The position numbers and the translations under genes were made by a program. From Rebecca billardiae RCC1528 (taxonomy: Eukaryota; Protista; Haptophyta): a stretch of 64,000 nt of DNA. The first letter of the stretch is position 1. Each line of letters begins with the position of its first letter. Shown here in pieces: positions 7,505 through 28,305 of this stretch. Location of the stretch: positions 310,001 through 374,000 of the forward strand of contig OZ251242.1 in assembly GCA_965240325.2 (NCBI GenBank), given 5' to 3'. Under the pieces are notes generated by a model that was not told the DNA's origin, made no database searches, and worked only from the letters and a program-made list of their open reading frames with translations.

Positions 7505-9616
7505 CAACGTAGTTAGGGGCCCGCGGTGCACCCTCCGTCGGCATATGCTGTCCGTCCAACGCGCGGCCGTAGCGGCAGCAGCAGCGCGGAGCGCCGTCGA
7601 GCACGCGCGGCAAACGAATAATGGAATATTATGCAGCGCGGGCGAGTCGACGGTCTGGAAAATGCGCGATCACGCCACAGCAGGCTGGCAGAGCCCGCCC
7701 GAGCTGCAGCATGCGCCGTAGGTGCTGCCCCAAGCTCTCGACTGCCCGTAAGCGGCGGCATGTGCGGCGGCGCCGGCGGCGGCCATGCTGCCCCGCCGTT
7801 GCGCGCCGCGGGGCGCTGCCGGCACCTCCGTGGTGAAGCGCACAGCGCTCGAGCCCACAGGGGCTGGCGACCGTCAAACCGACACCCCATGACGCGGGGC
7901 TGCGTGTGCCAGCTGCGCGCACCCCCTGGGCCCACCTGGCCCGCTCGAGCAGCTCGCGCCTTGGGTGCGCACAGCGGCTCGAGCATACCGTGGTATGGGA
8001 CGCCTGCTGCGGTGCCGCCGAGCACGTGCGGCCGAGGGTCACGCAGCACGGGCGACTCGACGGCGGCGAGCAGGCGCGACGGCCTCGCCGCGCCGCGGTA
8101 GAGCCTGCCCGGGCTGCAGCACGCCGTAGGAGCAGCCCAGCGCCCTCCTCCGCCCTCCAGCTTCGGCGCGCGTAGCAGGCCCGGCGGCGGCCATGCTGGC
8201 GTGCCCAAGCAAGCAGGCAGATGGGCGCGGCCGGCCGCGCCGTCGCAAAGCGCGCAGAACTCGAGCTCGGGGGGGCGGACGGCCGCCAAACTGGCGCCGC
8301 AGGACGTGGCACTGCGTGCGCCAGCTGCGCGCACCCGCTGCGCCCGCGTAGCCCGTGCGAGCGCCGCGCCTCGAGCACACGCCGCAGCAGCTCGACACAG
8401 CCACTGCAGCGCGCACGCAGCCTGCACGCCGTGGCCCGTCGGCATCTTGGAAGCCGCCGAGAGCGTGTGCTTTCCCCGCACGACGGCGGTAGCTGCCGCG
8501 ATGTATACGAGCGTGCTGCCGCGCCGGCCGCCGCTGCCCGGCCGCCGCGCCGGCCTCCACTCCGCGCCCGCTGCGCGTCCGCAGCTGGCAGCTGCGCTGC
8601 TGCGCCCGCCGTCAGCCGGCGGCGGTGGCTGCCCGCGCTCGCTGGGCGACCACTCGATGATGCGCGCAGCGTAAAGTGCGCGCTGGGCACCTCCTCGTCG
8701 CGTGCAATTTCGAGGTAGTCCTGCATCTGCTCCTGCATCAGCCCCTCCCACCCTGCGCGCGGGCGCGGACGGAGTCGCACGCACGCGGTCCGATCGACGA
8801 TCGATCGAGGGCGCGGGCCGCGGCAGCGGGACGGGCGTCGACGCGCAGGTTAGTTAGGTATGGTGCCGGCGCTTCCCGCAGGCGTTGCGCGCTTGGGGCG
8901 AGTGGGGCGCGTGGGCGAGACCAGCAGCCAGCCAGCCCACGCCACCGGGGCGAGGGCACCGGCGCGGCGCGCACGCCTTTGCACGGCATCCAAACGCTGG
9001 CGGGCGGGTAACCTGTTTTCACAAGCGCCTCTCTTTCATTATGGGCTTATGGCACAGGAGTACAGGACGAGGTTCATCCATCGAGGCAAGCGGGTAACTG
9101 GCTTTAAATAGCGCTATTCAAAAGAATCTCTTTCAATATTATGAGGAGGTTCATCCATCGAGGCAGACGGGTAACTTGGTTGGACAAGCGCCATTGAAAA
9201 GAATATATCTTTTAATATGACGAGGCGGTTCATCCATCGAGACAGACGGGTAACGTATTTGAACAAGCACTATTCAAAAGAATCTGGCTTCATAGCTGTT
9301 TTCGACCCAAAACAATCAAACGTCGCTCGGCAAACTCGTACTTCAGCATACAAGAGGGATAGGAATACTCACTTGTTTCACCCCCGGGGTATCTGATCCC
9401 ACGTCCGTCCATAGTAGATACAAGAATTGCAGCGGGCGCGGCCTTTTAAGCTGTGATGGACAGCATACCCCCCCTCAAAAAGTCGAAAACTCACCCTCCA
9501 ACAGCCCTCAAAATCGTCCCCCATCCCCTTTTCTTTGATCAAAAGATCTTTTTGACAACGTAGTGAGGGCCCCCGGCGGGGCTCCACGCTACGCGCTCCG
9601 CCCTGCACCGCGGGCC
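7505..9616. mobile_element. Putative non-autonomous or degenerate DNA element with mixed direct and inverted termini
   Basis: 13-bp inverted repeat GGCCCGCGGTGCA (7518-7530 / 9604-9616); imperfect 22-bp direct repeat (7505-7526 / 9556-9576); subterminal 78-bp tandem array; broken internal ORFs; no clear TSD. Confidence 0.4.
9071..9295 (+). repeat. ~78-bp tandem repeat, 3 diverged copies plus an eroded upstream copy
   Basis: Units begin GGTTCATCCATCGAG at 9071, 9148 and 9227; each has CGGGTAAC and AAAAGAAT. Confidence 0.85.
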
Positions 9617-9669
9617 ATCATGATGCATGCATGATTGATCATCAGCAGACATCATCAGTCACCGCGCCA

Positions 9670-12437
9670 TCAGCCGGCCTCCTCGCTCGGCTGCGGCTCC
9701 ACCGCGCCGCCCTGCAGCTGGCGCTTGACAAGCTCCTGGTACTCCGCGCAGCTCTCGAGCAGCTCGGCGTGCGTGCCCACGCCCGCGACGCGCCGCGCGC
9801 AGAGCACGACGATCCGATCGGCGGAGACCACCGTCGAGAGCCTGTGCGCGACGACGAGGGTGGTGCGCTGCTGCACCAACGTGTCGAGGGCGGCCTGCAC
9901 GAGCGCCTCCGACTGCGCGTCGAGTGCGGACGTGGCCTCGTCGAGCAGCAGCAGCGACGGGTCGTGCAGCAGCGCGCGCGCGATCGCGATCCGCTGCTTC
10001 TGCCCGCCGGACAGCCGGACGCCGCGCTCGCCCACGAGCGTGTCGTACCCGTCTTCGAAGCCGGAGACGAACTCGGCGGCGTTGGCCTGCGCCGCGGCGG
10101 CGCGCACGCGCTCGCGCAGCGCCGAAGCTTCCTCCGCGGCCGGCGGCGGCCGGCCGGCGGCGAGAGCGTCGGCGACCTCGGCGGCGTGCCGCGCGCGCGC
10201 GCCGTACGCGATGTTGTCCGCGATCGAGCACGCGAAGAGCGTCGGCTCCTGCGCGACGAGCGCGAGCTGGCGGCGCAGCCAGCGGCCGTCGACGCGCGGC
10301 AGCGGCACGCCGTCAATCAGAATGCGCCCGGTCGCGGGCTCATAGAAGCGCATCAGCAGGCCGATGATGGTCGACTTGCCGCCGCCCGACGGCCCGACGA
10401 GCGCGACGGTGGCGCGCTCGGGCACGCTCAGCGAGAGCCCTTCGAGCACCAGCGTGTCCGGCCGCGCGGCGTACGCGAAGCTCACCGCCTCGAACGCCAC
10501 GCGCGGGACAGTGCTGCCTGGTGCGCGCTCGGGCACCTCGCCCGCGCTGCCGGCCGCGTCGAGTGGCGACGGGATCGCCGGCACGCGGTCGATCAGCTGG
10601 AAGACGCGCGTGGACGAGCCGACCGCCTCCATGAAGGAGGAGAAGAGAGACGCGACCGTGCCGAGCGACGCGCCGATCTGCGGCGCCGGTGCGAGCACGG
10701 CGGCGGGGAGGTTGGTGAGGGCAGCGGGCAGGCGGTCGCGGGGCGCACCGCCGGGCGCGCGCGCGCGCGGCGCTGGCGCGCGAGGGGAGGGTTGCGCACG
10801 CTCCCCCGCGACGCGGTCTGGCGGGCGGGCGGACGCGCGCGCCCAGCTCGCACCTGCACCGCGTACATCACGAACGAGATCAGATCTCCCAGCCGCGCGT
10901 GCCCCTGCAGCACGAGCGTGCAGCCGAACCACAGGATGGCCACCATGGCCAGGTAGAAGGCGAGGGTCATGGACGCCATGAACGCCGCGCCGTAGCACGC
11001 CTTGGCGATGCCGAGGGCGTACGCCGAGCGCTCGGCGGCGGGCGCGCCGGCGCGCGCGCAGCACGCGCCCGAGACCAGCGCGCACGCGAGGCTGACCAGC
11101 CCCTCCGTACCCGGATTACCCACGGCGGTAATATACCCGCCCAGCTGCAGCGCCTCCGCGCCGAACGCGCGCACGGTCTTGACCGCGCCGAGCGCCTCGG
11201 CGGACGTGTCCGACGCGCGCGAGACCGCGTCCTGGTACTTCTCGGACACGGCGCGGATCGCGCGGCCGTACAGCACGCCGAACACCGCCATCGGCGGCAC
11301 GACCGCCAGGCAGACCAGCGTGAGCTGCCACTGCGTCGCGGCCATCAACACGATGGAGAGGGCGCACATCATCAGCGAGCGCAGCAGCGCGGAGACGTTC
11401 GAGGTGGCCGCGTCCTGCAGCTTGGTGCAGTCCGCCATCAGCCGCGAGAGCAGCTCGCCCGACTTGGCCGCGTCGAAGAACGCCGGCTCCTGCGACAGGA
11501 TCGCGCCGAAGAGCGCACCGCGCAGCCGCGCGACCACTCGCTCGCCGGCCGAGTTGAAGAGGAACGCGCGCACAAACGTGAGCGCGGCGCCGGCGGCGAG
11601 GATGCCGACGAGCTGCAGCGTGTGCGCGCCGAGCCGCGCGCCGTCCGCCTCGACCACCGAGTCCACGAGCAGCCCGAAGAACTTTGGCACCAAAAGGTTG
11701 GCCAGAGAACCGCCGAGCAGGCAGCCAAAACCGACGGAGAGCGCCGGCCACTCCGGGCGCGCGAGGCCGAGGATGCGCCCCGCCTTCGCGGTGAGGCCCG
11801 CCGCGGCTGGCGCGGGCGAGGGCTCGGGCGCGGGCGCGCCGCCCGAGGGCGGCCCGTCCTCGCCGCCATCCGCCGCCGCGCCGTCGAGCAGCGGCGCGCC
11901 CAGCGAGCCGTCGCCGACGGCGGAGCGCGCGCCCGCCGCCCAAGACACGGCCGCGCTCGCGCGCAGCAGCGCGCCGAGCTGCGCGGCGCCGAGCACGGCG
12001 TAGCCCACGAGCACGCCGATCGAGAGCCGCGCGAGCTCGCGCGCGTGCGCCGACGCCGGGTGCTCGCGCCGCGGCGTGTGCGCCCAGTGCAGCAGCTCGA
12101 CGACCGCCGCGCACACGCCGATCACCGACGCGACGACGGCCCACGACGCACCGAGCGGCAGGCGCGCTGAGGGCGCGGCGCAGGCGCGAAGCAGCGCCCC
12201 CACTGCGCCGCGCAGCGCGGCGCACGCCGCGAGGATCCACAGGTGCGGCAGCGAGCGCAGCACGTGCGCCTCAAACCACGACGATGACGAGGCCGGCGAC
12301 GGCGACGGCGGCGCGACGGGCGCAATGTACGCGAGAATCGCGAGGCCCGACGCGCCGAGGAGGGCGTCGAGCGCGAGGAGCACGCCCAGGAGCACGCGCG
12401 CGGCGAGCGCGCCCGCGTCACGACGCGCAGGGGCCAT
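9670..12437 (-). CDS. ABC transporter B-family half transporter (ABCB10/TAP-like); exons 12437-10854 and 10677-9670
   Basis: TMD motifs GERVVARLR..QEPAFFD..SGELLSRL; Walker A GPSGGGKST; signature LSGGQKQRIAIARA; Walker B LLLLDEATSALD; AHRLST. GT-AG intron 10853-10678 restores the frame. Confidence 0.93.
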
Positions 12438-20802: not shown

Positions 20803-21519
20803 TCAGAAGCCCACGCCGTCGAAGCCATGCTCTGCCCAGCCCGCGTCAGGCTGCTCTGCGGCCGAGCGCCAGTGCGTCCGACGCCGAGCCGGCGGCGCGC
20901 GCCGCGCCGTGCGCCGGTTCGTGTCCTCTGCGTGGTGGTGGTCGTCGTCGTCGTCGTCGAGAGCGTAGCGCTCAGTGACATGTAGCAGGTGCGCGGCGCG
21001 GGTGAGCGTGCGCGCGTGCGCGGAGCCCGGGCGTCGCGCCGGCGGGCGCAGCGCGTCCAGGCTCGCCGCCTCGAGCCCCGCCCGCCGCGCGTCCAGCACA
21101 GACTCTCCGCCCCCCAGCGGCGGAACACCAAGGTCCGCCCAGTGCGCGCGCCGAGCGAGCGTTGTGTAGCCCAGGGGCATGCGGAGGAGCTCGAGCGGCT
21201 CGATGCACTCGACGACGATCTTGCCACGCCGACCAACGGGTGCACGCGCGCCCCACGCGCGGCAGCGTAGCACCGCGCGCGGCGCCACGCGCAGCGCACT
21301 CGCGCGCGGCACGTCGGCCGCCGCCGCGCGTTCAAACGTCGCGTAGCAGTAGTAGCCGCCCCCGCCGTGCGCGGCGGCGCCGAGTGGCCCGAGCGGCTGG
21401 CGCATGGCCACGCCGAGCGCGTACTCGGTCCGGCCATCGTACACCGAGAGCAGCCGCGTGCCCACGCGCGCCACTTGCTTGAACACCTCGACCACCTCCG
21501 AGCCGTCGTCGGCCGTCAT
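20803..21519 (-). CDS. Conserved hypothetical protein (protist-type domain of unknown function)
   Basis: ATG-started ORF with globular composition: FKQVA..LSVYDGRTEYALG..HGGGGYYCY..PRAVLRC..G..GK. Family resemblance is from memory. Confidence 0.65.
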   Translation of the reverse strand: MTADDGSEVVEVFKQVARVGTRLLSVYDGRTEYALGVAMRQPLGPLGAAAHGGGGYYCYATFERAAAADVPRASALRVAPRAVLRCRAWGARAPVGRRGKIVVECIEPLELLRMPLGYTTLARRAHWADLGVPPLGGGESVLDARRAGLEAASLDALRPPARRPGSAHARTLTRAAHLLHVTERYALDDDDDDHHHAEDTNRRTARRAPPARRRTHWRSAAEQPDAGWAEHGFDGVGF

Positions 21520-21921
21520 CCCTCACGCCCGGGTCGAGGGCACGGCCGGTTCACCGTCCGGAGTCCGGACCGCGATGATTTTCGGGGTTCGAGTCGGCCG
21601 CGCGACGGCGATTTTGTGCGGATTAATTCACGCGGACGAAATAGTCATGTTCCGGCGCACAAAGCCGCTCCGGAGCGCAAATGGCGCGAACCGCAACTCC
21701 ACAAGACCACAACACTGAACCTGATGAATCCCGATATAATCATGCGCCCTGCGCTAGGACAGTGCGGGTACCTTTCACACAAGTCCAATAGGTGCCAATA
21801 AGTGTGGCGGCCCTGGACTCGCGAACGAGCAGTCGCGCAGTGCAGTCAGCAGTGCTTCCGCCAAGCAGCGCGCCCGGCCACTCGCGCGCGCACGCTCGGG
21901 CGAGCCACGCCAACGAGCACG

Positions 21922-23697
21922 ATGGGGGCCGCGGGCGCGCGCGGCGGGCGCGCATCCGCCGCACCCGCCCCGCGATCCACGCTTGTACTCGCCTTCTGGC
22001 TCGCGCTCGCCCTCGGAGCGCGCAGTTCCGCGCCGCCCACGCCGCGAGCGGCGCGCCGCCCGCCGCCGGCGCGCGCGCTCGTGCCTCCGCGCGACACGGT
22101 GGCGGCCAGGCGCGTGCCGCGGCTGGCCGAGTCGGTGGACGACGCGATTGACCGCGCGATCGAGACCGCGCGCGCTGCGTGCGACGTGACCGAGGTGCAG
22201 CCCACAGACGCGCGTGGCGGCGGCGGCGGCGCGAGCTCCACATCGCCGCCTGCCGGCGGGAGCGCGCGCGCGCTGTGGGCGGACGCGGCGAGCGCGGCGG
22301 CGCGCTCGAGCTCCGCGGCTGCGGAGGGCGAGCGTGCGCCTCCGCCCGACGGCGTCGTCTCGCTCGGCGCGATGCACGGCTGGTGCCTCACCGCCGCCGA
22401 GCTCGCCGACATGCAAAGCCTGCGGTCGACGCTCGCGCCGCGGCTTGCGTATTTGCCCGCTGCGCACGCGGCGCGCGTGCTGACCGCGCTCGAGCTGGCG
22501 TACCAGGCGCAGGGCCGGCTCTCCGCCTCGCGCGACCGCTCGCGCATCGCGCGCTCCGTCGCCCTCGTCGAGCTGCTCGCCGGCCTGCGCGTGGGCGCGG
22601 ACGCGCTCGTCGCAGCAGTCCTGCACGGCGCCGTGCTTAGCGGCGACGCATCGCTGGAGGAGTTGTCGACGTGCTCGGCGGTGCTCGGCCCGGCGGCGGC
22701 GGCGGCGGCGGAGGGCGGCGAAGGGGCGGAAGGGCGTGAGGCCGACGCGCTCTTCGCCGCGGACGCCGACGCCGACGCGCTGCTCGGCGGCTGGGGCGAC
22801 GTCGGCGGCGGCGTCCCGGATGCTCGCCCGCGCGCGGCCGGCGGCGCCGCGGCTGCGGCCACCGCCGCCGCCGACGAGGACGGCGGGCGCGACGGGGTCG
22901 ACGGGAAGGCGGCAATGGGCTCCGGCGGCGATGAGACGTCGGCGTCGGCGCCCGCGACCGGCACGCGCGCCCTCGCGCTCCTCACGTCGCTGTGCAAGGT
23001 GCGCGCGCGCGCGCGACCCGTGCACGCAGCGAGTGCGCCCCCGCATGCGGCGCGTGCGCGCGCGCTCGATCCGCGCAGGCGCCGTGCGCACGCTCGCGCA
23101 GCCCGCGCGGGCGCGCCGACTGAGTGCCGCCCCCGCGGCCGCGCCGCCCCGCGCTCGCGCGCCGCGCAGGTCGAGCGCCTCCTCGGCGCCATGCGCGCCT
23201 CCGGCACCACAGGCTCGACCGCGCAGCGCGAGGCCGCGCAACTCCTGGTGCTCGCGCTAGCGTCCGAGCCAACGGCCGTGCTGGTGCTGCTGGCGGCGCG
23301 CACGCTCGCGCTGCGGGACGCGTCGGAGATGTGCGCGGGCGCGCGCGCGCACGCGGCGCGCGAGGCGCTCGAGCTCTTCGCGCCGCTCGCGCACCGCCTC
23401 TCCATGTGGTCGTTCAAGCTTGAGCTCGAGCAGCGCGGCTTTGCGGCGCTGCATCCGGACGCGTGCGAAGCGATTTCGGCCCAGATCGAGCGTCTGCGTA
23501 CCGACGCGCGGCCGTCGCTCGAGCACCACAGGGCGCGGCTGGCGCGCGCGCTGGCGGCGGACCCGTGGCTGCGCGCGCACGCGCCCTCGATGCGCGTCGA
23601 GGCGCGCCTCAAGGAGCCCTACTCCGTCTGGCGCAAGGCTTGCCGCACCGCCGCTCGGCGCGGCGCGAGCGGCGCGAGCGGCGCGCGCGGCGGCGCG

Positions 23698-23728
<31 letters not shown>

Positions 23729-26569
23729 CGGCGGTGGCGCGGCGGCCGCGCGCGGCGCCGGCGGCGTCGCAGGCGTTCCTCGTGGCCTCGGACGTGCTCG
23801 GCCTGCGCGTCATCTTCGAGGCGCGCCCGCTCCACCCGCAGCTCGACGCGGCGGATCGGGCGCTGCTGTCATCTCACGGCGGCGACGGGTGCGCGGCGGC
23901 GGAGGCGCGGGACGCGCAGGTGGCCGGCCGCGTGCTGGCGCTGACGCACTCGCTGTGGCCGCCGGTGCCGGGGCGCGTGAAGGACTACATCGCGAGCCCG
24001 AAGCCGAACGGCTACCGCTGCGTCCACTCCACCGTGCTCTGGGGCTCGCTGCGCGCAGAGGTGCAGGTGCGCTCGGCGGCCATGCACGCCCACGCAGAGT
24101 ATGGACCGGCCGCCCACTGGATGTACAAGAAGCGCCGCCCGAGCGTGGGCAGGGATGCGGGGAGCACGGCGGGGCCGGCGGGGGCCGGCGTCGGCGCGGC
24201 GGCCGACGCACCGCCCGCCGCCCACGCCGCGCCGGGCGCCGCCGGCGGCTCCGCAGCGGACGCCCTCTGGCTGGCCGCCGCCGCCGAGTGCGCCGCAGAC
24301 GCAGGCCTTGTCCAGTCGGCAGCGCCCGCGTTCGGGGCGACGATTCCGACCGCGCCGCCGCAGCGCGCGCTGCCGGACCCGGACGCGGCGGTGGATGCGG
24401 AGGCGGGGGCTGGTGGCGAGCCCGGCCCCGCCGCGCGCCTCGGCTCGCACGGCGCCGCCGGGCCGACTGCCGCCGCCGCTGCCGACCGAGCCGACGCCAG
24501 CGGCGCGCCCGGCGGCGGCGGCGGCGGCGGCAGCTCGCGAGGTCCGAATCTCGGCGGCTCGCGAGATTGCGATCTCGCGCTCGAGGCGGCGCCGACGCCG
24601 CACGTGGCGAAGCTGCTGCGCTCGGTGCGGCGCGCGCTGCTGCGGGCGGGCGTGTACGTCGCCACCTCGCGCGGCCAGGTGCTCACCCTGCCGCGCGGCG
24701 CCACCGTTCGGGACGCGCTCCTGCGACTGCACGCGATGGAAGGTGAGCAAGCGATTTGCGAGCGCGCACCCGCGCGCCGCGCGCGCCGCCGCGGGACCAG
24801 AAGGCTCATCAAGCATGCACTCATCAGCATGCATGCATGCATGCTCGCGCGCCGCGCGCGTGCGAGTGCGAGAGGGCGCGGCGCGTGTGTGCCCCGTGCC
24901 GCGCCATACGCGCGAGGGGGGCGCTGCACACGGCGCGACGCCGCCCGCCCTGCCGCCGCGCGCACACACACACCCGCGGCCGCCGTGCAAGCGCTCACGC
25001 GCGCCGTCCGTCCGCGCGCGCCGCCCACCCACCGCCGCGCCCAAACCCCGCCGCCGTCGGCCACGCGCGTGCGCGCGCTCGCGCAGCGGTCGTGGAGGGC
25101 CGCGTGCGCGTCAGCGTGAACGGGCGCCGCGCCGCGCTCGGCGCCGCGCTCGCCAACGGTGACCTGATCGGAGTTGACGCGATTGAGCCGGCGGGCGGCG
25201 GCGCGGCCGCGCTCGCCGCCGCGGGCTGGCCGGCGCGCGGCGCGGGGCGCGCTGGCGAAGGCGGCGGCGGCGGCACTGGCGGCGGCACTGGCGCCGACAG
25301 CCGCGGCGCGCGGGACGAGCCGCGAGCGCGCCGCGCCGCGCGCGGGCCCTCGCACTCCTGGGCGTTCGGGAGCGAGCGCACGCGCGGCGCGCCCGCGCCC
25401 GCGCCCGCGCCGCCGGCCGCGCCCGCCGCGGACGCCGCGGATGGCGGCGGCACCGTGTGCGCGCAGACGGCGCAGCAGCCGGCGGTGGCGGGTGCAGGCG
25501 CGGCTGAGGCCGCCGCTCACGCGCCGGCCGACGCGACGCCCGCCGCCATCCGTGCCGCGGACGCCACCGCGCCCACGCCGAGCAGCGGCCGAGGCCCGCC
25601 GCTGGCGCGCGCCCTCGCCGACGCCGCTCGGCGCGCGCCCGCCGCCGTCGGCGCGGCGTGGCTCGCAGAGGCAGAGTTGAAGCACGGGCGCGTCGCCATG
25701 CTCGGCGCCGCGCACGTGCTGCTGCACGCGGCCGCCGCGCAGCGCGGCCTCGAGCTCCCGCTCGCGGCGCGCTTGCTCGCGCCCGCCGCCGACCTCGCCG
25801 CGGCGGCGGGCGGCGGCAGCGGCGCGGTGGGCGCGGCGGCCGCTCACGGCAGCAGCGCGGTGTTGTGGACTGGAGGATGGCTGCTCCTGGCGGCGTTCGG
25901 CGCGATCGAGGGCGTGCAGGTGCGCGCGGCTGCGCGGCCGCGACGCTGCGCGCGCCGTGCGCTCCCCCGTTCGCGCCGCCCATGCGCGTGCACGCACCGC
26001 TGGGCCCGCGCGCTCCCTTGGCGCCGCGTTGTGCATTGTTGTTCGTTGTTACTGTCTGTTGCCATGTGCTGTTGTTGTAGTCTGTTGTCATGTCGTGTCT
26101 CGACTCTCGAGCAGCGCACTCTGCGCCCGCGCCGCAGTCCCCTGCGCCCGAGCGCCGAGACTGAGCCCAGGCGTCCCGCCCCCGCGCGCGCGTGCGCTCG
26201 TGCCGCGCCGACGCGCAGCTCACGCGCTTGGCCGCCGCGGACGCGGCGACCGCCGCGGCCGTCGCCGCCGCGGACTCCGTCAGCGCGCGCGTCGCTGAGA
26301 TGCGGCGGCGCGCCGAGCAGCGCTTGCCCGCGCCGCGCGGCGCGCGCGCGACGGCGGAGGCGGCGGCGGCGGCGGCGGCGGGCAGGGGCCCGTCGGGTGC
26401 GCCCCGCGCACCGACGACGCTCGAGGCGGCGGTGAGGCACGCCGACACCGCCGCCGCCGCCGCCGCCGCCTCGCTCAGCTCGGGCGAGGTCGAGGTGGCG
26501 CTGGGCCGTCTGGCGATGGTCTACCTGCTCGGCACCGCGCTCGCGCTGCTCAGCGCGCGCTCTTACTGA
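21922..26569 (+). CDS. RSH: RelA/SpoT homologue (degenerate HD, synthetase, TGS) fused to a C-terminal LHC-like three-helix domain; exons 21922-22998, 23170-24742, 25087-25919, 26219-26569 (~1277 aa)
   Basis: Synthetase motifs [54 protein letters not shown] split across a phase-1 intron ([11 protein letters not shown] / [18 protein letters not shown]). LHC motifs [12 protein letters not shown] and EVALGRLAM. All introns GT-AG and phase-compatible. Confidence 0.85.
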
Positions 26570-26735
26570 TGAGTACTACTGACGTAGTATACGATATACG
26601 CGTACTGCTGCTGGCGGTATCATCCGCAACTACGCTAGCAGCATCATCATTATGATTAGGCGGCGCCATATATCGTCGTAGCCACGGTCGGCGCCACCTC
26701 GGCCGGTAGCTAACGCAGCTGCTAGCATATTGCCA

Positions 26736-26856
<121 letters not shown>

Positions 26857-26991
26857 TTAGCGTGCATATCATAATCGACGACCGGCGGGCCGGCCCAGAC
26901 CTCATGACAGACACGAGACTCCGTGCTCACTCTGTCTGCTGCTCGCGCGCAGGATAAGGCCTTGGCATCACGCGCTGGTGACTGGCACGAC

Positions 26992-28071
26992 TTACTCGGG
27001 CACCCAGTCAGCCACCCCGCAGACCTGCTTGACGATCTTGACATCTGCCTTGCCCGTGATGCTCGAGAGCCAAACGCGGTATGGGAGCGCAAAGATGACC
27101 GAGAGCTGAGCGAGGAGGAACCAGTACGGCCCCACGAAGAACGGGGTGCTCTCGCCCTGGCGAATGGCGAGCGCACGGTCCGTGAAGCCCTCGAGTTCGA
27201 GAACAGCGGTGAAGCTATTCTTGGAATCGCGCGAGTGGAGCTGCCTCCACGCGTGTTCGTGGCGGAGGTAGACCTCGTCGCCGACGACCGTCCTGGACAG
27301 ATCCAACTTGGTCATGCGGTAGCGTTCGATGTCGCCCACTGGCGGCGACGCGTCCGACCAGCTGGCAAGCGGGACGACCACGTCTGCAGTATGGGTAACG
27401 ACCGTATGAGAGGTCGACGACGTCATGTTACCGTGACTGTCGTGACTGCCGGTGCTGGAGGTTGTGGATTCGTGCGAGCAAACCATGTGCCAGCGCACAA
27501 CGACCGGCGTTTGCGTGCGCCATGAGTTGAGCAAGTCGTTCATCTCCGACCCGCCCTTGATGGAGAGCAAGTGGCGGAACGTGCGCGAGATGAGCCCCTC
27601 CAAGAAGAAAGCCACCACCACAAAGGGGAAAGAGATGAAAGCGTAGAAGCCTATCAAGGGGATCCCTAGAACCATGGTGATGAGGAAGGCGTGGGGGACG
27701 ACCATGCCGAGGTGCATGTCGCGCTTGCAGCCAACGACCAGACCGCTGTCCGGTAGCGGCTCGGCCTTCGGAGGCGGCAGTGCCGCCACCGTGACCATCT
27801 TGCCGTCTTCAGGCTGCGCCTTCTTTGGCTTGGCGCCCGCGGCCAGAGGCTTGTACGTGACGACCATCTCCTGCCCATCCTGCATCCCGGGCGGCACGCA
27901 GGCGCGCACGGACTGCCCGTCGGGCGTGACGGCCAAGAACGGCACATCGGCGGCCAGCCCCGGCGGGATGGCCACGGTCATGAACGCATGCGAGGGCTCG
28001 GGTGGAGCCTCCACGTCCTTCACGCTGACGTTGACAGGGTCCGTCTTCTCGGTGTTGGCCGTGTTGCCCAT
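26992..28071 (-). CDS. TMEM151-like membrane protein, paralogue A
   Basis: Intact ORF; two TM helices then [29 protein letters not shown], and C-terminal [19 protein letters not shown], resembling the TMEM151 family. Start MGNT at 28071. Confidence 0.7.
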
Positions 28072-28305
28072 CCCGGTGCTCGGGACAGCGGATGGATGCA
28101 CAGCTGATGCAAGGGTGCTGATGCAAGGGCGGTCGGCCGGTCGCTGATGAAGGGATCAGCGTCCTTCACGCTGACGTTGACAGGGTCCGTCTTCTCGGTG
28201 TTGGCCGTGTTGCCCATCCCGGTGCTCGGGACAGCGGATGGATGCACAGCTGATGCAAGGGTGCTGATGCAAGGGCGGTCGGCCGGTCGCTGATGAAGGG
28301 ATCAG
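28014..28305. repeat. Perfect 146-bp tandem duplication spanning the TMEM151-A start codon
   Basis: 28014-28159 equals 28160-28305. Confidence 0.95.

Follow-up and report, generated by a model that had tools for sequence, protein, structure and literature searches.

In a 64,000-nucleotide stretch of contig OZ251242.1 from the haptophyte Rebecca billardiae RCC1528 (hereafter the window, whose own positions serve as coordinates below), the forward strand carries at 21922-26569 a gene model that joins a long RelA/SpoT homologue (RSH), of the family that makes the alarmone guanosine tetraphosphate (ppGpp), to a C-terminal tail of the light-harvesting complex (LHC) type. The evidence supports reading the RSH part, its TGS domain and the LHC-like tail as one fused gene. 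We put at roughly 0.7 the probability that the whole is best explained by one gene encoding a synthetase-only RSH that would be tethered to the thylakoid by its LHC-type tail. An earlier annotation made from the DNA letters (the original prediction) had proposed such a thylakoid-anchored fusion; its single gene with retained orthologues stands, and we infer that its thylakoid anchor is plausible.

Exon structure of the gene model

The region is about 80% G+C, and long open frames are present in all six reading frames. Because of this composition, a long open frame alone is weak proof, and the exon model was therefore examined directly. Joining 21922-22998, 23170-24742, 25087-25919 and 26219-26569 gave 3834 nt, a multiple of three, and a frame of 1277 amino acids that ends in a stop codon and has no internal stop. 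All three introns are of the GT-AG type, with GTG at the start and CGCGCAG at the end, and all three exon junctions align without gaps to three relatives described below (P0001, P0002, and P0003). Joining and translating the exons thus bore out the three introns and the single frame of about 1277 residues that had been predicted, and the domains and motifs lie where they had been placed.

Exon 1 (21922-22998) contains the start codon, a hydrophobic signal-like segment, an Arg/Ala-rich transit-like stretch, a GWCLT motif, and the first half of the HD domain. Intron 1 (22999-23169; 171 nt, GC 0.86) is in frame and without stops, and its retention would add 57 residues and cause no truncation; the gap-free fit to the three relatives supports its removal. 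Exon 2 (23170-24742) continues with the second half of HD (23206-23409), a helical bridge, the RelA/SpoT synthetase core (23788-24135), and a low-complexity stretch before the N-terminal half of TGS, which starts at 24613. The TGS domain is then interrupted by intron 2 (24743-25086; 344 nt), and an intron at the same point of TGS was also found in Diacronema lutheri genomic DNA (L003) and in two further loci (L004 and L005).

In exon 3 (25087-25919), TGS is completed by its C-terminal half (to 25175), which is followed by an Ala/Pro/Gly linker with a GPSHSWAF motif (25176-25658), LHC helix 1 (25659-25733), and LHC helix 2 (25866-25919), which ends with the exon. The helix-1 motif begins at 25659, with the Glu of ELKHGR at 25674. 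As predicted, this exon unites the rest of TGS with LHC helices 1 and 2, with no stop and no Met upstream of helix 1. Intron 3 (25920-26218; 299 nt), whose GC of 0.73 is the lowest in the gene, falls in the stromal loop that follows helix 2. Exon 4 (26219-26569) contains a conserved loop motif (26273-26314), LHC helix 3 (26486-26566), and the stop codon (26567-26569).

An insert of 92 Gly/Ala/Asp-rich codons in exon 1 (22687-22962), lying within the dead HD domain, is absent in all three full-length relatives. We found no GT...CGCGCAG-type site in it and only weak in-frame GC/GT...AG pairs. It was treated as coding low-complexity sequence; a lineage-specific expansion is one possibility, and an in-frame intron of unusual type is another.

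Domain content of the predicted protein

Using Pfam on the separate exons, we recovered the synthetase domain in exon 2 (PF04607, RelA_SpoT; 71.7 bits, E value of 7.9e-20, cutoff of 27 bits) and the LHC family in exon 3 (PF00504, Chloroa_b-bind; 30.9 bits, E value of 4.8e-7, gathering cutoff of 22.3 bits). The HD_4 domain (PF13328) is divided between exons 1 and 2, which score 34.8 and 17.9 bits; the relatives score 56 to 80 bits. The end of exon 2 matches the first 23 positions of TGS, and only the spliced protein has a complete TGS domain: residues 841 to 913 align with positions 377 to 447 of a hidden Markov model (HMM) built from 95 bacterial RSH sequences (6.1e-8), and this alignment spans the intron 2 junction. 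In the relative P0001, TGS (PF02824) scored 34.7 bits. All three families named by the original prediction, RelA_SpoT, TGS, and Chloroa_b-bind, were therefore present. The RSH part also matched NCBIfam TIGR00691 at 7.9e-49, and the best solved structures for the core were Rel/RelA chains in the Protein Data Bank (PDB) at 2e-46, including Thermus Rel.

The bacterial RSH continues after TGS with a helical/ZFD/ACT region. In none of the four family members examined did anything align to these positions of the HMM (452 to 715), and PF19296, PF13291, and PF01842 had no Pfam match in the exons or the relatives. Additionally, no EF-hand was matched by Pfam in the exons. The ZFD/ACT end is thus replaced by a linker and an LHC-type module, and the expectation that an LHC-like module occupies the place of the regulatory C terminus was upheld, since nothing aligns to the ZFD/ACT region and PF00504 is matched instead. 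These matches are not a composition artifact, because similarly composed open reading frames (ORFs) in other frames or on the other strand match no Pfam family. The ORFs at 24012-26036 (-), 21846-23612 (-), 25111-26448 (-), and 23463-24746 (+) were rejected as other genes because they had no Pfam match.

Relatives with the same architecture

Three proteins that contain PF04607, PF13328, and PF00504 together were recovered when the RSH part served as query: P0001 (1370 amino acids; JGI sample 3300016846), P0002 (965 amino acids; D. lutheri KFE25_011573), and P0003 (1124 amino acids; Logan assembly of SRR12366011). Each aligns to the window model along its full length, and all four share the motifs W..W..L...G..EG.QL, DSVS.RLA.IR, and EVA.GRLAM. 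When a profile of the tail was searched against 1.84 billion representative proteins, members of this family came first (P0007, which is a D. lutheri genomic ORF, and P0008, P0009, and P0010, each from a further contig of its own), followed by ordinary LHCs and LHC polyproteins. Orthologues with the same architecture, as the original prediction would have it, were thus found in P0001, D. lutheri (P0002/P0007), P0003, and the loci L004 to L006. Long matches to the tail profile (P0011 to P0025 and others) were rejected as extra fusions, being LHC polyproteins or spurious. A homologue search with the synthetase core returned bacterial RSH only and no additional fusion, and one with the tail of P0003, in which low-complexity words dominated the candidates, matched nothing but the query. 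One sequence labeled "Discosporangium mesarthrocarpum" (P0145) is a 730-residue RSH with the full bacterial architecture. It matches deltaproteobacterial RSH at nearly every residue, and bacterial contamination of the brown-alga assembly is its probable origin.

At the DNA level, the D. lutheri frame (L003, JAGTXO010000022.1) is open over 8998-11899 and runs through helix 3 (EFERAAGRVAML) up to the stop. Because this genomic frame stays open through helix 3, we consider the NCBI model KFE25_011573 to be mis-spliced near its 3' end. The frame at L003:8001-11899 encodes SERLAALRAADRG...EFERAAGRVAMLHL, of which the model (P0002) lacks LHC helix 3 entirely and the linker in part. In L004, L005, and L006, the end of TGS, the linker, and the tail lie in a single frame, and in L004 and L005 the exons for TGS and for the segment before it precede the tail. 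Upstream of its called start, the ORF of contig L001 continues as far as MWLLFLACLALAGVPCAVAAAAF, and from a signal peptide it is uninterrupted to a stop after helix 3, after which about 400 nt of AT-richer sequence follow; this contig looks like an mRNA. IMG samples of its series are probably transcriptomes of cultures.

Across six loci, the end of TGS, a poorly conserved linker of 112 to 291 codons, and helix 1 share one stop-free frame, and the other frames usually have stops. The product of the chance probabilities for open linkers in these six loci is about 1e-5, with the factor for frame sharing not yet counted. Within the window, GC falls to 0.40 to 0.55 only at 21600-21800 and 26600-27000 and is never below 0.675 inside the gene. 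Furthermore, GC at third codon positions is well above GC at second positions in the exons, a pattern that is absent in the introns.

The hydrolase site is lost and the synthetase site is retained

In an alignment of the family with bacterial bifunctional RSH and Thermus Rel, all hydrolase residues but one His are gone: HD is replaced by HG, ED by LS, and DRLHN by ARTLA, and the H...HP pair is absent. The HD fold is still detectable, but by its residues the hydrolase site is dead. On the synthetase side, the RxK, Asp, Arg, Glu-x-Gln-x-Arg, and HW..YK residues are kept relative to bacterial bifunctional RSH. The sole replacement within a synthetase motif is that of the Gly before RxK, which is Ala in the window and Ala or Cys in the family. 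The ppGpp-synthetase site is thus intact as judged by alignment, giving a core predicted to be synthetase competent. Because the hydrolase catalytic residues are lost, the enzyme would be synthetase only.

The tail is a divergent member of the LHC superfamily

The PF00504 scores of the relatives (27.0, 29.6, 38.6, 32.7, 31.2, 37.2, and 26.7 bits) are on either side of that of the window. When 6 tails were aligned with 44 canonical LHCs, the invariant columns were E15, H18, and R20 in helix 1 and E160, R165, A167, and M168 in helix 3, and the helix-2 Glu (E75) was nearly invariant. The chlorophyll-ligand positions held by Glu and His in helix 1 and by Glu in helix 3 are therefore kept in the tail. 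Helix 1 resembles helix 1 of an Emiliania huxleyi photosystem I (PSI) antenna chain and is of the textbook red-lineage LHC type. The best PDB profile matches of the tail were haptophyte, dinoflagellate, and diatom PSI antenna chains, at about 1e-10, and all of the 100 nearest ESM Atlas clusters carried PF00504. Helices were predicted at tail residues 5 to 35, 60 to 88, and 156 to 184, joined by long, Ala-rich loops. Taken together, these comparisons give good support to homology of the tail with the LHC superfamily, as a divergent three-helix member of the red-lineage type.

Two further motifs are specific to this family. The loop between helices 2 and 3 contains G(A)GSVSARLAALRAA(D/E)RG, which is strongly conserved (26273-26314 in the window; P0007 to P0010) and predicted to form a short helix, and the motif RGP(A/S)HGWAF is conserved directly after TGS. 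It is conceivable that the Ser residues of these motifs are phosphorylation sites.

Comparison with known systems

The original prediction knew of no described RSH-LHC fusion, and in this it was mistaken. Avilan et al. (Sci Rep 2019, PMC6881373) listed Ectocarpus RSH1 (CBN78357.1) with a Chlorophyll A-B binding domain. We found no mention of an RSH-LHC fusion beyond PMC6881373 in the literature searched. The fusion architecture is thus older and wider than this genome, and it had been noted once and never analyzed. What is new here is a version that is synthetase type by its residues, comes from a haptophyte, and is conserved across several Pavlovales-like genomes.

According to the supplementary sequence of PMC6881373, the brown-algal protein has the same order as the window protein: GWCxTxAE, HD, a synthetase-like domain, TGS, a linker, and three C-terminal LHC-type helices, its tail reading REVELQHARLSMFA ... 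GVLEGG ... RERELHNGRLAMIA at the very C terminus. In an alignment read by eye, CBN78357.1 keeps the hydrolase residues (HDTVEDT and DRLHNMRT) and its synthetase motifs look degenerate; the haptophyte protein of the window shows the reverse, with a dead hydrolase site and intact synthetase residues. Helix 3 of the Ectocarpus protein also keeps the Asn ligand, whereas the window family does not.

Closer in lineage are two E. huxleyi RSH4 entries in Table S2 of PMC6881373, XP_005759301.1 (annotated "RRM, MOAD") and XP_005763353.1 ("MOAD"). Like the window protein, both are from a haptophyte and combine a GWC motif with an HD site that is dead (MLAG/VLAG) and with synthetase-side motifs of the PLAxRLGMW type. 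After TGS, XP_005759301.1 ends with VEAERKHGNVALTA ... PVEAGRAAMLVL, which we read as LHC-like helices 1 and 3; the orthology of the E. huxleyi entries to the window gene was judged by eye. The tail of XP_005759301.1 is more degenerate than that of the window, its LHC likeness was not flagged in PMC6881373, and it has an extra RRM insert. The EVQxR portion of the synthetase is apparently missing from this gene model. Two database corrections follow: the D. lutheri model without helix 3 and the unannotated E. huxleyi tail.

Members of the extended RSH4 clade, which includes CRSH and diatom PtRSH4a/b, have, like the window protein, a hydrolase that is degraded and a synthetase that is conserved. 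In the window protein, the Gly before RxK (equivalent to G45 of SAS1) is substituted. The "red RSH4" clade shows this substitution too, and its diatom members are nevertheless active as synthetases (PMC6881373). By these residue features, the window protein fits the description of extended RSH4. It differs from the clade in having no EF-hand and a complete TGS (partial in PtRSH4a/b), and the membrane tail occurs in the window protein only. Bacterial long RSHs (Rel, RelA, and SpoT, including Thermus thermophilus Rel, 6S2T and 7OHG) have the HD-synthetase-TGS core in common with it. In contrast to these, the window protein has a dead hydrolase and no helical/ZFD/ACT ribosome-binding end, and it adds long low-complexity inserts, a plastid-targeting-like leader, and the membrane tail.

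Enzymes connected to LHC-superfamily helices are known from other pathways. In plastid and cyanobacterial type II ferrochelatase and in the LIL3 system, as proposed for the window protein, a stromal enzyme is joined via a linker or bound to a thylakoid-anchoring LHC-superfamily helix. The C-terminal chlorophyll a/b-binding (CAB) motif of ferrochelatase, joined by a linker, alters kcat and oligomeric state (PMC3563542), and LIL3 anchors geranylgeranyl reductase (PMC6819399). In these systems the helix is a lone CAB helix or belongs to a separate protein, whereas the window protein has a complete three-helix LHC-type unit, and their enzymes serve tetrapyrrole or isoprenoid metabolism rather than alarmone synthesis.

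Proposed function and points that weigh against it

In four species, the leader has a hydrophobic h-region (Kyte-Doolittle hydropathy of 2.0 to 2.8) followed by an Arg/Ala/Ser-rich, acid-poor stretch; in L001, AVAAAAF follows the h-region. LHC proteins have a stromal N terminus and a lumenal C terminus. The LHC-like tail is C-terminal in every lineage seen, and the enzyme would thus be left in the stroma, this being the only orientation in which LHC topology allows a stromal enzyme.

In the explanation that we favor, a single nuclear gene of a very GC-rich haptophyte related to Pavlova and Diacronema encodes a long RSH with a dead HD domain, an intact synthetase, TGS, a disordered linker, and a three-helix LHC-type tail. 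Its signal-plus-transit-like leader would carry the protein into the complex plastid, where the tail would insert in the thylakoid like any LHC, tethering the enzyme part of about 1000 residues on the stromal face. The ppGpp would then be produced at the photosynthetic membrane and not on ribosomes. By analogy with the CAB tail of type II ferrochelatase, the tail may also influence activity, either by binding pigment or by docking to antenna or photosystem complexes.

Several points weigh against this explanation. Plastid targeting is suggested by a hydrophobicity and composition heuristic only, membrane insertion and placement in the thylakoid rather than the envelope are deduced from the kind of tail, and the fusion in R. 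billardiae itself rests on genomic sequence and not on transcripts. Two metagenome scans, one for an exact 45-mer of exon 3 and one for a degenerate motif that is present in L001, gave no match in a collection that does not include the L001 sample. The tail is very divergent, at about 27 to 39 bits compared with 174 to 450 bits per canonical LHC protein or polyprotein, and every family member has Ala or Leu at the helix-3 position of the Asn/His chlorophyll ligand. AlphaFold models of the tail were mediocre. Model 1 (pLDDT 64) had no Foldseek match, and a wide VIA search with it gave no LHC. Model 2 (pLDDT 71) found only LHC chains among its top 50 Foldseek matches, with nonsignificant E values of 0.37 to 3 and TM scores of 0.2 to 0.3, and VIA Z scores against LHC chains were at most 7.7.

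To our knowledge, Ca2+, acting through CRSH, is the only established input to plastid ppGpp synthesis, and in plant and algal RSHs the end that senses ribosomes in bacteria is missing or altered. The trigger of plastid ppGpp synthesis is an open question, for which an RSH with an LHC tail would offer a concrete input route. The LHC module would bring the synthetase to the one site at which light, the supply of pigment, and the assembly of antennae are sensed, and a stress response could be tied directly to the photosynthetic membrane. The ppGpp targets reported in PMC12104861, plastid gene expression and cpSRP-dependent LHC delivery, act at this site as well, and ppGpp is described in that paper as binding the cpSRP (chloroplast signal recognition particle) GTPases that deliver LHC proteins. 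Therefore, an LHC-tailed synthetase could, as a conjecture, be part of a feedback loop.

Alternative explanations

In the strongest rival to a simple tether, which follows the original prediction, the tail is a pigment-coupled sensor: it would bind chlorophyll or xanthophyll or join the antenna belt of PSI or photosystem II, and excitation or pigment state would switch the synthetase allosterically, making ppGpp output a direct readout of antenna state. Three of the four core ligand positions in helices 1 and 3 (Glu, His, and Glu) and both ion-pair Arg residues are invariant, the helix-2 Glu nearly so, and the closest solved relatives are genuine PSI antenna proteins of red-lineage algae. The family-specific motifs GSVSARLAALRAA in the loop and GPxHGWAF after TGS also suggest more than a greasy anchor. 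Set against these are PF00504 scores far under those of canonical LHCs, long and variable Ala-rich loops unlike those of antenna proteins, and the missing helix-3 Asn/His ligand. This ligand is also lost in PsbS-type, non-antenna members of the superfamily. The change in kcat brought about by the ferrochelatase CAB tail offers a precedent, but direct pigment binding by that CAB domain is itself not evident (PMC3563542). In a diatom, ppGpp lowers photosynthesis and antenna proteins (PMC8252717). On balance, we regard a sensor as possible but unlikely.

More doubtful still is a broader form of this idea, in which the tail is a true pigment- or antenna-docking sensor and the LHC-anchored synthetase of haptophytes (RSH4) and the LHC-anchored hydrolase of Ectocarpus (RSH1) are opposing arms descended from one ancient fusion. 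If it were true, alarmone level would report antenna or chlorophyll status and not ribosome status, and the plastid stringent response of the red lineage would be wired directly into the thylakoid.

Instead of staying tethered, the enzyme might be released from a polyprotein-like precursor, made as one chain and then cut in the linker, so that the RSH would be soluble and the LHC-like protein free. LHC polyproteins are cleaved in euglenids and dinoflagellates, they are frequent among the weaker matches to the tail profile, and the family has a long, disordered linker with little conservation. Yet no repeated decapeptide of the cleavage type was seen in the protein, and the conservation of GPxHGWAF together with the strict 1:1 arrangement of RSH and tail across lineages points to a functional link. 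We know of no processing of LHC polyproteins in haptophytes. Such cleavage seems very improbable.

The least probable reading, that two neighboring genes, for an RSH and a small LHC-like protein, were wrongly joined, draws on the rarity of stop codons at 80% GC, on a 172-codon linker in the window that at 86% GC would be open by chance with a probability of about 0.44, and on a window gene model based on sequence instead of RNA, but it is largely refuted by the half TGS and LHC helices 1 and 2 that exon 3 holds with no Met between them, by frame continuity through diverged linkers in six other loci of lower GC, by a GC profile with no intergenic-type dip within the gene, by the mRNA-like contig L001 with all parts in one ORF, and by the same order in the Ectocarpus and E. 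huxleyi gene models.

Flanking sequences

Upstream, a 5' intergenic or promoter region (21520-21921), with a GC dip to 0.545 at 21600-21799, separates the RSH-LHC gene from a divergent gene. That neighbor (20803-21519, -) is an ORF of 238 amino acids, FKQVARVGTRLLSVYDGRTEYA...LGYTTL, with no Pfam match. It also adjoins the RSH-LHC gene in a related genome (L002:84-791, +), in the opposite relative orientation, so that the pair shows local synteny with an inversion. Downstream, a convergent ORF of 369 amino acids (26992-28101, -; GC of about 0.63) has hydrophobic segments and no Pfam match. The 3' intergenic region between it and the RSH-LHC gene (26570-26991) has a GC of 0.40 to 0.45 and contains a perfect (AT)58 microsatellite at 26738-26853.

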